A DNA stretch of 64,000 bases from Trichosphaerium sp. ATCC 40318 (taxonomy: Eukaryota; Protista; Tubulinea). A program made the position numbers and the translations under genes. The first letter of the stretch is position 1. Every line of letters begins with the position of its first letter. This document shows positions 38,718 through 46,100 of this stretch, in pieces. The stretch covers positions 1 through 64,000 of the forward strand of contig JALMLS010000342.1 in the NCBI GenBank assembly GCA_038496445.1, written 5' to 3'. The notes below the pieces were generated by a model. The model saw only the letters and a list, made by a program, of their open reading frames with translations. It was not told the DNA's origin and searched no databases.

Positions 38718-41380
38718 ATGGACGTTACTCTAGAAGGTTCAGGGCTTAATACTGCTATAGTAGGGGAAGTTGCTTTGTGTACCATTTCCCCTGCAAAAGT
38801 GAACGACAAAGCGAAATGGGACGTTAAGATCTCGGGGCCAGACCACACACTTGATTTTAATCCTAATGGGGATGGTACGACAATGTCAATGACAAAACGA
38901 GCAATTGAACAACACCACAAGCTCGCTTTATAGCTATTGCACACTTTAGAGCGTCCTAGCACAAGCGTTCAAAGTAACTCCTCTGTAGGTACTTGGGATA
39001 TTGAATGGACGCCAGAAAAGCGAGGTACACCATACAGCAACGTGTAAAACCAACTTTTGCAAGGGGAATACAAAATCTCGATTACTATTGATGGCAAACA
39101 CGTCAAGGGCAGTCCATACAAAGTATCTGCAGGTACAGCATTATTCTAACGTTTATTTTCTGTACAAACCAGTAAACTCGCAATAAAAATTATAAGTGTC
39201 GCTAATCGCACCTAATAGGAAGTGGTAATTTGCAGGCTAAAGCCGGTACGTTTTGAGAACCACAACCGCTTTTTTAATTTATTTATTTTCTCTTTCAGGT
39301 ATTGCTCTTTCATCAGCTACAATGGAAACCATCTATGGCCCAGGTCTATGGGGAACGCCTCTGGATCTCAACGCCACTAATACACTGACGATTCATCCAA
39401 AAGACGAAGATGGCACCAGCATCAGAACACAGAAAGTCAATATTCACCTTACATTGGTAATACCTCATTACCAACAACGTGGAATTAACTCTTCTTCATC
39501 AGACGCACAGCGATGGAAGTGCCATGCAACATGACATTTTTGAAAATGGTGATGGATCATATGACGTTGATTGGACTCCAACAAAGAGAGGAAAATACAC
39601 CGGAGTGATCACGTTTAACAAATCTCATCTCTTTCCACAGATAACTCTAAAATCATCAGGCATGTTACTTTATGTTGTCGAAATAACAGGCGAAGTTAAT
39701 TTTGACGAACTGAAACGGATAATACTAAATTGACTATCAGTTTAATCATCAATTAATGCGTTTGTAAAGGCCCAGTCTTCGTTGAAGGACCTGCAATTGA
39801 AGAAACTATTGAAGCCGGTGAAGAAACAGATTTTACAATATATTGTGATGAAGACACACGTGAGAACGATATTTCTGTTGTTATAACTGGGTATGCCTAT
39901 CACATGTTCGCTGCAATACCTTAACTTTATGCATAGACCCGAAACTCTCAAACCAGAAGTGCTCAACAACGATGACGGTTCATTTGATGTTGATTTTAAA
40001 GTTGACACTGACGGAGAGTATTTGCTTAAAATTTCGGTTTATGATGAACAAATTGATGGTAGCCCATTCCGTCTTACTACACGTATGTCATATTTTTTAT
40101 CTCTTCTTCAAAAAATAAAGTCTAACCTTCAATTAGAAGGAGAGCTTGACAGACTCGAAAGCCTTGGACAAGCAGAAAAAACTGCAAGGTAATTGTGTTA
40201 TTAACTCTACTGGTATTAACGTTGCTTTGTAGAGAAGACGAACGCAAGAAGCGTTTGCGAAAACTCAAGGAGGCAAAGGAGAGACCACAACAAGCACAAA
40301 AACACATCGAGTATGTTTACATTTTAATACTTATTGTCAAGTAATTTTCTGTTTACCTTCTTACATACAACTCCAGCGAACAAAAGGAGAGACGAGAAAA
40401 GCGTGGAGAAAAGAAACCTGTCGAGAAAAAACCAGTTCCTGCCCCAAAGGTTGAAGAACCTTCTAGTGAAGAGAGCTCTGGCGAAGGCGAGGATGTAAAT
40501 GAAGCATTGGAGGATGCTGTATCGCCTAGAACAAAACGAAGAAATCTGGCCATCAAGAACCTAGATGGTCAAGTATCTGAAGTAGAAGGTCCAGGTATAG
40601 ATGGTGAAGAAACTAACGATGTTGGCGAAGAGATACGTATAAAATTTACACCAAAGGACAAAACAGGAAATCTTGTAGACTTGGATGAAGGTACAACCAA
40701 GTGCTTTCCTTCCCTTTTTGTAGACTTGCTGACAATTTTTGTAGAAATAGTCGAAGTGATCGTAGAAGGTCCAGAGGGTGACATTAAGACAACTATTGAG
40801 AAGAAGGAAGATGGTACTTTTGAGATTGCTTGGAGTCCAGAAGAAAAGGGTGAATACACCATTAAAGTAAAAGCAGGCGATAAAGTTGCTGTAGATACCA
40901 AAGTAGTTGTTGGTATTAAGGGTACTCTAGAGCTTTTTTTTTCACCTCTGTGCACCGTTTATTAATGTATCTGGCAGCTGAAACTCAAGAACCAGATAAC
41001 AACAGAGAAAAAGAAAGTTTGCCTGTAGTATCAACAAGTAAGTTTGATGTTTGGGTTTGTATTTTTTTTGCTGTGTAGCGTTTCCCTCACTACGCGCTTT
41101 CTTTTATGGCTTCGTGAAGCTAATGGCTTTTTTTTTTGTAGAGGCCTCAACTTCAAAAAGCCGAAAAGCTGCACCTTCAGAGAAGAAAAAACAAAAGGAA
41201 GAGGTTGTTGAACCTATTGAAGAATCTGAAAGTGATAAAGGTGTTGATGAACAGGAAGGCGAAGTCGTTGTACCTATTACAACTGAAAAACCTAAAAAGA
41301 AGAAGAATATACTAAAGAAATTATTTTTCTGGAAAAAAAAGAAAAAAGGAGGAAAAAAATCTAAAAAGTCAAAGAAGTAG
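38718..41380 (+). CDS. Filamin-repeat protein without CH domain; acidic linker and polybasic C-terminus
   Basis: LEGSGL, NGDGT|WDIEWTP..G..HVKGSPY, NNDDGSFDVDF and KEDGTFEIAWSP; tail KKNILKKLFFWKKKKKGGKKSKKSKK. Confidence 0.82.
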
Positions 41381-41523: not shown

Positions 41524-43136
41524 TCATAGTTTGCTTGATGGTATCTGAGAAATAATACCCTCCTTCAGAAGTTGATCTATTCTTTGCTTTGAGAACTTTA
41601 ACTTCTCTAATACTTGTCTTGTATGTTGACCACATAGAGGCATGTTATCACCTGTACATCCAGGGGTACGAGATAACCTAGGTTGCGGTACAGGCACTCT
41701 AATAAAAAGACTGTAAGTTTTGTAACGTAAGAAAAAACTACGAACCCATTCTTCATCATGTTGGCTTCTTTCGTATGTGAGTGCGTAGCAAGTTCGTCTA
41801 ATGTTAGGGCTATGACACCATTAGATTAAATGAGGGAATACATGGTTTACCTGGTGCTACACAAGCGTCAATATGCTCAAAGATAGAGTCCCATTCCATC
41901 ATTGTCTTGGTAGAAAAAGCTTCTTGAAAAAGTTTTCGCATTTTTGCCACTGGTCTCTATCAAATTGTTGTGGGGGTTCTGGCATGCCTGCGTGTTCTTT
42001 CATTGCCTTAATAGATATTTAGTGACACCATTCTCATACGTTTAGCATACCGTAACAAAGTTGTTAAAAAAACGTGGTTCTAAAGCACCTAAAGAGATCC
42101 ATCTACCATCCTTGGTCTAACGTTCAACTTAGATTTAACCCACTAAAATAACTCTAGTAGTACCTTGTAACAATCATAAAAAGGGGCACCAGTATCAAGA
42201 AGATTGGTACCACTAACACAGAATATTTAGTTCAGTCGAAACATTGGTAAAACAGTACGGTGGTCCATTCCACAGGGGAGTCTTAATTGCTTTGCTTAGA
42301 TAGGTGCCTTGCCAAAGGTTAGTATAGTAGTGGAATTACTTGCACACATACCCAAATACAAAAGACCCTCAGCCATAGACGTATTGACAACTTGACCCTT
42401 TCCTGAGGACGCCCTTATTCGAGTTAATTAACTAAATATATCACGTGATACTAACCTTTCAAATAAAGCTAACACGATACCAAGGGCACACATAAGACCT
42501 CCACCAGCGAAATCACACAATATATTACCAGGCGTAGTAGGCACTCCATTAGCGCGCATCATTGTCTACATTGAAAAATTTTGGATTATTGGTTAGTTGG
42601 AAAAGTTTTTCTTTAGTACTGATAGCAGTCCGCTCATTGCAACAAAGTTTATATCGTGTCCTGCTCTTTTTGCATACGAACCTCATTATTATTTTAGTGA
42701 CATTTGGTGCAAAAACATTTACCTTTGTTACCAAAACCATTCAATCTAGCGTAAATTAGGCGTGGGTTTACTTTAAGTGCCTCTCGCGGGCCACAACCAA
42801 GTCTTTCCATGACACCTGGTCTAAACGGTTCTAGAAGGACATCTGCCTTCGAAATGGTTAAACAGAGCGATAAGTAAGCTGTCTACTTTAGAAATGAGGT
42901 CCATAATAGTTGCCACCCCTTTAGGTTGCTTCATATTGACAACAATTGATTGTTTCCCTTCTGATAGCGTATCTAATGTGGGTGCCAAGCTTCTATCAAC
43001 GCGAATTACCGTTGCGCCAAAATCTGCCAATATTTTACCACAAAAAGGCGCTACAGCATTGAGTACATACACAATAACCATGAATACCTGGCGCAAGCCC
43101 AGCCAACTCCAGTACAACGACACCGGATAAAGCCAT
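41524..43136 (-). CDS. AMACR: Alpha-methylacyl-CoA racemase (CoA-transferase III), peroxisomal
   Basis: VLELAGLAP|..[48 protein letters not shown] and GSLEPRFF; C-terminal -SKL* PTS1. Confidence 0.95.
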
Positions 43137-43280
43137 CACCAAATAAAAAGTCCAAAATAAACCAAAAACCAAGACTTAACCCCAGATAAATAGTCATACG
43201 CAACTCTAGTTTATTTCAATTGTCATTACATTATTACAAGTATGTAGCAAGCTTTTCTCTAAATAACTCTTTTTTTTTGC

Positions 43281-45298
43281 TTACTCGTCGGTGGTTACTT
43301 TCTTTTGATAAAGGTAACCGAAATCTTTTGCGCCAAGCGCGATCAAGTCTTGTTTTGGATGCCAGTCCACGTGTAGAACCTGAACAAGAGTCAAAAAATT
43401 GTTTTCAAAATTGTATGAGTATTTACCTTTTGAGTGGAGTCTAGTCTATCTCTGAACAAGTCGTTTGCTGGTTGGCCCGGTTTGGTAGCACTAAGGGCAC
43501 GTACACCCGCTAAAACCATTAGATGAAGAATTCTTCTTTTCTAGGGCGTACCTTGCTCTCCAAATACATCACAAATATAAAAATTGTTGTTGTAAGAACC
43601 AGTTAGAACGCGAGACGAATTTGGATTCCAGCAGCATTCGAATTTATCAAAAATACTATCATTCTCATAGAGGTCACATAATTTAGATATCAAGTGATCG
43701 TGAAATTTGATTGTCTTTACAGGTGCAGTTTCCATTCTGGAAGAAACAGAATAAGCAAAAAAAAAAAGCACAAAAATCTTCAGGGCGTACCTCAAATCCC
43801 AAACTTTTTGTGTTAGATAATCTCGCGATAGAATAAACCTGCCACAGCGACTGAATTTTACGTCGCTAATAGTAGTGACAAGTTCTTGAAAGAAACCGCC
43901 AATATCACTCTCTGGCTCTTCAAATACTACCGTTTGGTGAATACTTGTCATAACAACAATAACTCGCTACAAGTACCTTTAGAAAAGTTGTCGCACAAAG
44001 CGTGGTCACGCATATCGCCAAGACGAATTGCTCCTTTACTCGTAGCGTAAACCAAAACATTACACCTCAAAGGGTGGAACGCTGCAGAAGTGATAACTTC
44101 AGTCAAATCATCCATATTCTCGGGTTTAATATCCACAATACCTTAAGATAGCGTGAATAAAACAAATCAACATGAAATAAAAAAAAAAAGCCGAGCGTAC
44201 TGAAAGCTTCGTTTGCAATATTTACGTTCCATAAATTAATACGTAAATCGTCGGCCGAGATCCATGTCTCACCGTCAGAGTTGAAGGCAATTGAATTAAT
44301 GTTGTAAGTGTGCGCTCCTACACCGAGTGTCAAAAAGACAAAATACAAAAAAAAATTAAAATTAATGCGCTGTACCTTCAAAAGTTTGCTTATTAGTGAC
44401 TTGAACGTCTGGGTACGATTCTTCGCCCTCTCCTCCAGCACTACGACCTCGTTCTACCATCTTGAATAGTTTTATGGTCTTATCTGCGTCGAGTAAGATT
44501 TACACAGCCAAAATAAATAAAAATACAACGACAACGAACCATTGCAGGTCATCATGTAGTTGGCATGTCCAGAAAATGGATACCAGCGGATCATATTAAT
44601 TTTTTCTTCTATTTCCATTGACGTGAGGAAGTCAAATTCTGCATCGTGGCTCTTGAATTCCGTGTAGAGTTGGTAGGTGCTATCTTCTTCTTGCTTTAAA
44701 ACAACGACTTGGCCACAGTTGTAACCAACAGCAAGGTAATCACCGGTAGTGTCAAAGCATAGGGATGAGATCCAGTTGTCAGATGGACCTAATTTACCGT
44801 GTTAGCGAGGTGCGTGCTATTTTCGACTAAGATGAGTTCCTACATTTAGAAATAGGCTAAATGGCGCCGTAAAGGGTTGTAACAATACGAAATTAATTTA
44901 TATGCGTTGGTGGAGGCAGCGAAAAGGCAAAAAACGCCAAAGAAAAGGATTTCAGCGCAACTGTTGCAATTACCTTCTGGGTCGTCCTCTTCATCAGATT
45001 CTTCCTCTCCGAACATTTGGCTGAACTCCCACTGCGAGCCTTTGTCCGTGACCTGGTACTCGAAGAAATCTCGCCAACATAGGATGTATTCAGCTTCTTT
45101 GTCGCTTATAGGGGACAAATTGTGTTTTTTTGCTAATTCCGACTCGCTATAGAGCTTTCGCCAGATATCATTGTGTTTTCCGGCGTCGTTTAATCTTTGG
45201 CAAGTTTGAAGCAAATCGCAGACTTCATTGAGCGCTAGGAACCCAAATATGCGTGTTAGAACCCCTTTGGACAGCGAAGTAAGGTTTTTCTGTGACAT
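43281..45298 (-). CDS. F-box - PP2A B55 (PPP2R2-like) WD40 fusion
   Basis: F-box [42 protein letters not shown] in the same exon as the B55 start WEFSQMFG; then [77 protein letters not shown] and TGSYNN. Confidence 0.9.
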
Positions 45299-46100
45299 TG
45301 CCGTTTATATGATAATTCGAGTGTGCTTAGTGTACCATCACCAGTTAACCCGTGCCACAGTCAGTTTAAGAAAGATTCAATAAGTCACTGTCTCGACTAA
45401 AACAATAATTCTGCATCAGCTAAAAATGGTAGCGCGTAATTTAGCATAGTAGTCCGCTTAAAAAAGGTGTACACAGCTGTATGGGTTACTTTGTAGATTT
45501 CGTCCTCCTGTTTACTTAATGTTGCTGTACATTTCCCAGATAGCGTGTATGGCACAGCAGAACGCTTGGGACAAACAAAATGTGAGCGCTACATTCATTG
45601 AACTTGTGTAAGGTTGCAACCTGCTGATAGTATCACACCCAAACTGTGGGTACGACATCCGTTACAGGTGTATTCGGTGCAATAACACGGATAGATGTAA
45701 TTTGGGTCTCGTTATCAAAGCAAATCACTCCAAAAAGAAGTCACGTGTCTGTCGTTAGTATCGAACGTTTTAGATACTGCACTGCCTAGTTGTGTTGAGT
45801 TTGTTCGATTTCTTTGAAGCCACAGTGTAGGGCTTTTGGCTCGTGCTTATAACCCTGTAAAAGTCCTCGTCTAGCCGATTGCAGAGAATAGAAAGTTGCA
45901 CAGCAAAAAAGAGCTGCTTTTGAAGCATGGCGACACGTGATCAAGCCACAATACGTACCCACCTACTGTCCCAAGACACGTTGACAATACCAGGCATTTT
46001 TGTAAAGAACATCTTGATCTTATGGCTGTTTTTCAAATTTTTTGTAATTTCTTGTGGTAGAAAATATCTCTTAAGATGGCACTTTGTTTTTGAATCAGTA

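Follow-up and report, generated by a model that had tools for sequence, protein, structure and literature searches.

PP2A-B55 and the SCF ubiquitin ligases are among the main machines of cell-cycle timing. To our knowledge, cross-talk between PP2A-B55 and SCF is known solely via separate proteins. In PP2A-B55, the beta-hairpin arm of the B55 subunit (strands 2C-2D) reaches the scaffold subunit of the phosphatase. In the SCF receptors of the FBXW type, the top face of the propeller binds short motifs of proteins and phosphoproteins. Links between SCF and PP2A include the degradation of the holoenzyme-free PP2A catalytic subunit by SCF-FBXO42 (PMC13233325) and the turnover of PR55alpha, which depends on FBXL20 (PMC8570931).

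The gene described here was found in a stretch of Trichosphaerium DNA of 64 kb (hereafter the window). The encoded protein begins with an F-box, continues with a helical linker and ends in a full B55 propeller. It resembles the FBXO42 and FBXL20 links in that it would connect SCF with PP2A; those links, however, are made by separate proteins, whereas a single polypeptide holds both modules here. In comparison with human PPP2R2A and yeast Cdc55 (PDB 3DW8, 8TTB, 8SO0), homology covers the full length of the seven-bladed propeller at about 46-50% identity. Both the strand motif near the N-terminus of B55 and the docking residues of the top face are shared, and a hairpin arm is predicted between strands 2C and 2D. 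Unlike PP2A B55/PR55 subunits, the window protein has about 89 extra N-terminal residues (the F-box and the helical linker), an arm shorter than the human one, and replacements at several near-invariant positions.

The order of F-box, helical linker and WD40 propeller is also that of FBXW7/Cdc4, beta-TrCP/FBXW1 and FBXW11. The window propeller, however, is closest to B55 and not of FBXW descent, and the dimerisation (D) domain of the FBXW receptors was not seen in the window protein. The B55s of Tubulinea that lack an F-box, such as those of Nolandella (P0011) and Rhizamoeba (P0040), are 61-68% identical to the window protein and share with it WEFSQMFG, KTIKLFK, the acidic stretch and a short arm (17-27 aa). 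They differ from it in starting 13-28 residues ahead of the B55 motif, with no F-box.

No description of an F-box joined to B55/PR55 was found in full-text literature searches, in agreement with the initial annotation, which knew of none. PP2A subunits do not feature in the paper on the Skp1 interactome of Dictyostelium. We conclude that the F-box-B55 fusion is real, conserved and undescribed, and that both of its modules are of known kinds.

Gene structure and transcripts

The F-box-B55 gene lies on the minus strand. Its coding sequence (45298-43281; 1467 nt) is divided into nine exons and encodes 488 aa. All introns, with lengths of 185, 56, 58, 59, 50, 54, 42 and 47 nt, are of the GT-AG type. 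The 5' splice site reads GTAC, with C at +4, in five of the eight introns, and six of the eight are in phase 1. The GC content, the sizes of introns and exons and the marine origin of the matching transcriptome are in keeping with the description of Trichosphaerium sp. in PMC10521059. The transcript and the exons are located as follows.

43187..45367, minus strand: spliced mRNA, approximate extent (contigs of runs X1, X2, X15 and X18, in which 8/8 introns are skipped)
44974..45298, minus strand: exon 1, residues 1-108, running from the start codon through the F-box, the linker and the B55 N-terminal motif to the acidic stretch (the frame is open from the ATG at 45298)
44540..44788, minus strand: exon 2, propeller blades 1-2 (alone, E 1e-14 to B55alpha; joints in contigs)
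44376..44483, minus strand: exon 3, KTIKLFK followed by the beta-hairpin arm in its shortened form (alignment to human, contigs)
44201..44317, minus strand: exon 4, AHTYNINS; D251 corresponds to human D197 (model, contigs, alignment)
43977..44141, minus strand: exon 5, L279 and V282, corresponding to human L225 and V228 (model, contigs, alignment)
43791..43926, minus strand: exon 6, FEEPE...GGFFQE; F333 and F334 correspond to human F280 and F281 (model, contigs, alignment)
43552..43736, minus strand: exon 7, Y390, E391, D393, F396 and K398, corresponding to human Y337, E338, D340, F343 and K345 (model, contigs, alignment)
43427..43509, minus strand: exon 8, variable loop of blade 7 (model, contigs)
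43281..43379, minus strand: exon 9, final propeller strands and stop codon at 43281-43283 (model, contigs, alignment)

The four runs come from four studies. Each yielded one contig (1570-1651 nt) that lacks all eight introns and has its joints exactly as modelled, and the joint between exons 1 and 2 (about 44972/44786) is present in all four. Since public contigs without any intron represent spliced RNA, the F-box and the propeller are carried on one mRNA, with UTRs of about 70 nt (5') and about 95 nt (3'). A transcriptome ORF from an independent marine project (P0232, from contig L006, a transcript of 1634 nt) is the same as the gene model over 488/488 residues. Contig L006 has in-frame stops upstream of the ATG at 45298, which is therefore the true start. 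The initial annotation had placed the F-box and WEFSQMFG in a single exon, and exon 1 is indeed uninterrupted from 45298 to 44974. At the level of RNA, the junction between the two modules is confirmed by the intron-free contigs and by P0232, all of which span both modules.

One could suppose that an assembly chimera or an error in the gene model has joined separate F-box and B55 genes. No evidence in favour of such a join was found. Against it stand the presence of both modules in a single exon, their coverage by intron-free contigs in four studies, the identity of an independently obtained ORF to the model, and the occurrence of the same layout in at least eight other organisms. An artefact of this kind is extremely improbable, and the F-box-B55 gene is intact and expressed.

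Two neighbours were recognised in the window. A CoA-transferase family III gene at 42428-43172 (minus strand; PF02515, E 4e-9 on its first-exon ORF) begins at most about 100 nt away from where the B55 mRNA ends at its 3' side. The two genes share a strand, and their spacing is very tight. An ORF with a filamin/ABP280 repeat is found at 40507-40965 (plus strand; PF00630, E 3e-10).

The F-box, the linker and the propeller

The modules at the N-terminus of the protein are located as follows.

45143..45277, minus strand: F-box, about residues 8-52 (PF12937 match at residues 13-50)
45032..45142, minus strand: helical linker, residues 53-89 (alignment of 17 F-box-B55 proteins)
45008..45031, minus strand: B55 N-terminal strand motif WEFSQMFG, residues 90-97, corresponding to human B55alpha 12-19 (HMMER alignment to 3dw8_B)

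The Pfam F-box-like profile PF12937, the cut-off of which is 24.3 bits, gave 27.6 bits with exon 1 alone and 24.4 bits with the whole protein. As judged by this profile, the F-box of the window copy is above the cut-off but marginal on the whole protein. The orthologues scored 25-46 bits (P0031, 46; P0055, 38). The Leu-Pro with which most orthologues start the F-box is absent from the window protein, which has L-S instead. Many functional F-boxes lack the proline.

A family profile of 17 N-termini matched F-box proteins only in the PDB, at least 40 of them, with E-values of 4e-8 for FBXO3, 9e-8 for FBXL5, 4e-6 for FBXW7 and 1e-4 for Skp2. The AF2 model of residues 1-97 (pLDDT 79) showed a three-helix F-box fold, with helices predicted at residues 11-18, 23-32, 34-40 and 43-52. 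In a Foldseek search with this model, nearly all of the best 50 rows were F-box proteins, most of which had been solved with Skp1. The E-values were weak (0.014 at best), as the domain is so small. Against Skp2, the model gave an rmsd of about 1 Å over 42 residues. The Pfam score, the family profile and the fold matches agree with each other, and the assignment of the N-terminus as an F-box in the initial annotation holds on all three.

In the linker, helices were predicted at residues 54-58, 66-71 and 75-85, and a W-R-x-x-[YF] motif is conserved 12 residues ahead of the B55 motif. Purifying selection acts on the N-terminal region: between L001 and L005, the closest pair with DNA, dN was 0.014 and dS 0.175, a ratio of 0.08.

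The marginal Pfam score and the change of LP to LS would fit with the window protein being an ordinary PP2A B55, the F-box of which is vestigial in this species or serves only the turnover or localisation of the protein itself via Skp1, with no other substrates recruited. The hydrophobic pattern and the helices of the F-box, however, are retained in the alignment and in the models, and the module, which is under purifying selection, has persisted through very deep divergences.

The propeller was identified by comparisons of sequence and structure. In a phmmer search of the PDB, residues 88-484 of the window protein matched human B55alpha with an E-value of 1e-111. The full AlphaFold model (pLDDT 89, pTM 0.87), in which a strand is predicted at WEFSQMFG (residues 90-96), matched B55alpha chains in Foldseek with an E-value of 1e-51. 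The VIA-align comparison with B55alpha gave a Z-score of 56.5 and an rmsd of 2.4 Å over 386 residues, whereas other WD40 proteins had Z-scores of about 35. Chains of FBXW7, Cdc4 and beta-TrCP were absent from the 50 best structure rows for the propeller; the only matches to FBXW proteins were those of the F-box profile. A full B55 WD40 propeller, as originally proposed, is thus supported by both the E-value of 1e-111 and the Z-score of 56.5.

The acidic substrate-groove motifs that the initial annotation had described as retained are present, and the top-face docking residues are identical to the human ones. They include D116, Y178, D197, L225, V228, F280, F281, Y337, E338 and D340 (human numbering), and further F343, K345, E91, E93 and E94. 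The exceptions are K48 and H179, both of which are replaced by N, and E27, which falls in the gapped acidic stretch and is unplaceable. D116, D197, D340, F343, K345 and E91/E93/E94 have been reported to matter for the binding of Tau, E4orf4 and Eya3 (PMC3828177; bioRxiv 2025.02.04.636346).

To compare the constraint on the propellers, we used the 199 alignment columns that are conserved to at least 90% in canonical B55s. The F-box forms kept 74.2% (group 1) and 72.5% (group 2) of these columns, and their F-box-less relatives 72.6% (group 1) and 73.2% (group 2); the two groups are described below. Branch lengths in the tree were also similar for forms with and without the F-box. The equal conservation and the like branch lengths give no sign that the propellers of the F-box forms have escaped the ordinary constraint on B55. 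This absence of any difference from F-box-less relatives is a further point for the ordinary B55 with a vestigial or self-directed F-box.

All homologues of Tubulinea and Variosea, with or without an F-box, have replacements at human D47, G49, R51, Y86, K88 and H179. In the window protein, these near-invariant positions are residues 131, 133, 135, 162, 164 and 233. Since the replacements extend across both lineages, PP2A behaviour may differ there. The docking groove or the contact with the catalytic subunit in the B55s of Tubulinea and Variosea may not be the same as in the textbook enzyme.

The hairpin arm and the family in Amoebozoa

The arm between KTIKLFK and AHTY (44376-44460, residues 200-228) is 29 aa long, and a beta-hairpin is predicted there by AlphaFold with strands at residues 195-203 and 217-226. 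The arm of human B55alpha has 51 aa. In the alignment, 30 human residues (134-163) stand opposite eight residues of the window protein. The arm is therefore 22 aa shorter than the human one and LRVP is absent, close to the estimate of about 20 residues in the initial annotation. At the base of the arm, a P-R-[RK] motif, which is said to contact HEAT repeat 3 of the scaffold (this is attributed to Strack and co-workers in 2002), reads N-K-Q in the subclade of the window protein.

Arm lengths by group were taken from the sequence comparison, and the human figure was counted on the B55alpha alignment.

F-box forms of group 1: 26-29 aa
F-box-less forms of group 1: 17-27 aa
F-box forms of group 2: 23-50 aa, median 38
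Discosea: 34-68 aa
Fungi: 40-67 aa
Human: 51 aa

The F-box-less Tubulinea with arms of 17-27 aa are Nolandella, Rhizamoeba and about 30 others. Since the arm is short in F-box-less Tubulinea and normal in the F-box forms of Variosea, its length is a trait of Tubulinea that is independent of the F-box. From this comparison, we regard the short arm as a lineage trait of Tubulinea B55s and not as a mark of the fusion.

This result bears on the proposal that the phosphatase adaptor had been rewired into a ubiquitin-ligase receptor. The architecture is real, expressed and conserved, and the docking groove is kept. The departure from PP2A, however, had been deduced from the short arm, and ordinary amoebozoan B55s, namely the F-box-less forms of Tubulinea, have arms that are equally short or shorter. 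If the protein were purely an SCF substrate receptor, the propeller would be out of PP2A and proteins docking to B55 would be ubiquitinated instead of dephosphorylated. A real and conserved F-box, a preserved docking face, an arm shorter than in human and a weakened basic motif at the arm base in the subclade of the window protein would all be in accord with such a role. The short arm, however, is common to F-box-less Tubulinea B55s and the arms of Variosea F-box forms are normal; in addition, the F-box forms have suffered no extra loss at B55-conserved positions and have evolved no faster. We consider it unlikely that the propeller has left PP2A altogether.

Relatives of the window protein were first sought with exon 1. 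The search of the whole library gave six matches, three of which (P0001, P0002 and P0005) are first-exon ORFs of orthologues that run into the intron. On the contigs of these three ORFs and on two others from a scan of metagenomes, the F-box and WEFSQMFG are in one exon. This layout is seen in the genomic loci L001-L004. B55 exons then follow in L001, L003 and L004, and the contig of L002 ends before any could show. L005, an intron-free metatranscriptome contig, carries the whole fusion. Full-length F-box-B55 proteins are P0007, P0015, P0031, P0055, P0247 (Cavostelium), P0147 (Soliformovum) and others.

Two irregularities were seen in these contigs. L005, which belongs to a P0007-like orthologue, has a single frameshift midway through its B55 coding region (L005:1096-1162). 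As the intact protein P0007 is known from elsewhere, the probable cause is a mistake in sequencing or assembly. In L003, the F-box-B55 gene of a relative of 18% GC (L003:3357-3739), the halves of the F-box are in different frames, owing either to a very short intron or to an assembly frameshift.

With L005 as the query, about 40 F-box-less B55s of 410-430 aa were found that have WEFSQMFG, KTIKLFK and the short arm, together with a second set (group 2) that has WKLNQVFG and includes many F-box-bearing members. The lineage of each relative was assigned from its source name.

Group 1, F-box-less short-arm forms: Tubulinea (Nolandella, Rhizamoeba, Flabellula, Amoeba proteus)
Group 2, WKLNQVFG: Variosea/protostelids (with F-box, Cavostelium and Soliformovum; without, Planoprotostelium)
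Canonical B55s: Discosea (Acanthamoeba, Balamuthia and six others)

The transcripts L008, L010 and L011 contain in-frame stops upstream of the ATG, so that the F-box-less forms are genuine. In group 2, the ORF of Protostelium nocturnum begins at the B55 motif and may be truncated. Two further entries appear to be composite. P0150 (Planoprotostelium fungivorum PRP88053.1, 842 aa), named 'tubulin gamma chain', is a merged gene model, in which gamma-tubulin is followed by a complete group-2 B55 starting from its own Met just before WKLNQVFG. P0030, a 581-aa ORF from an Amoeba proteus transcriptome, has a C-terminal B55 half ahead of a full B55, and this doubling is probably an artefact of the transcriptome assembly.

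Among the matches listed, no canonical B55 came from a species of Tubulinea or Variosea, whereas eight species of Discosea were represented. This faintly hints that the short-arm clade provides the only B55 of Tubulinea and Variosea. If so, a purely SCF role of the propeller would leave those amoebae without a B55 subunit of PP2A, a further though weak point against that role. No second B55-like stretch was found within the window. P0232, P0248, P0012, P0031, P0044, P0038, P0054 and P0086 are all from different samples, and no sample among these held both an F-box form and an F-box-less B55.

In the tree calculated from the propeller only, groups 1 and 2 are sisters (100/99), separated by a long stem from canonical B55. 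Support was 100/100 for group 1 and 98/93 for group 2. P0015 and P0031 are the partners of the window protein in a clade (100/97) that arises from the polytomy at the base of group 1, as do P0007 and two clades of F-box-less forms. The F-box is present in most of group 2. In both groups, the F-box forms share one layout, with an F-box, a linker of about 40 aa and W-[RK]-x-x-[YF] exactly 12 residues before the B55 motif.

According to these trees and alignments, the fusion forms are an old amoebozoan family that is nested among the B55s of Tubulinea and Variosea. The simplest reading of the shared layout and the tree would be one ancient fusion followed by repeated loss of the F-box; the alternative is that the F-box was gained twice. 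Such repeated loss in related lineages is again what one might expect if the F-box were dispensable to an ordinary B55. Taking the points on both sides together, we regard an ordinary B55 with a vestigial or self-directed F-box as somewhat unlikely for the window protein.

An old, separate clade of F-box paralogues was also considered and was rejected, as the F-box forms of each lineage fall together with F-box-less B55s from that lineage. Dictyostelium phr2aB was dropped as a candidate F-box form: it was not among the group-2 matches listed, and the papers that mention phr2aB describe no F-box.

Possible functions of the fusion

We favour, with a probability of roughly 0.5, a dual role for the protein, in which it would be a B55 adaptor held on Skp1/SCF and would probably remain able to fit PP2A. 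The F-box at the N-terminus would bind Skp1, and the propeller would still dock B55 ligands and still fit the PP2A A/C core. One protein would thus couple the recognition by PP2A-B55 to ubiquitination by SCF. Ubiquitination could be directed at docked proteins, at the PP2A core or at the adaptor. The F-box-less B55s found beside the fusion forms look like these amoebae's normal B subunits of PP2A. For assembly with the A and C subunits, the one indirect sign is the conservation of the propeller, which is on a par with that of the F-box-less relatives. The dual role is weakened by the marginal F-box with LS, by N-K-Q at the base of the arm and by the replacement of residues across the whole clade.

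A more specific proposal is that the protein acts as a working SCF receptor with the B55 docking platform as its degron reader. ENSA/ARPP19-like inhibitors or mitotic substrates would then be degraded, or the PP2A A/C core would be ubiquitinated, in a manner comparable to SCF-FBXO42. We put this forward as a tentative possibility.

The hairpin arm of B55, which ranges from 17 to 68 aa, is far more variable than work on the human and yeast proteins suggests, and this bears on how the scaffold is held. The existence of a conserved, natural F-box-B55 fusion suggests a direct physical link between PP2A-B55 and SCF. In the amoebae that carry it, the docking surface by which proteins are chosen for dephosphorylation could serve to choose them, or PP2A itself, for ubiquitination as well.
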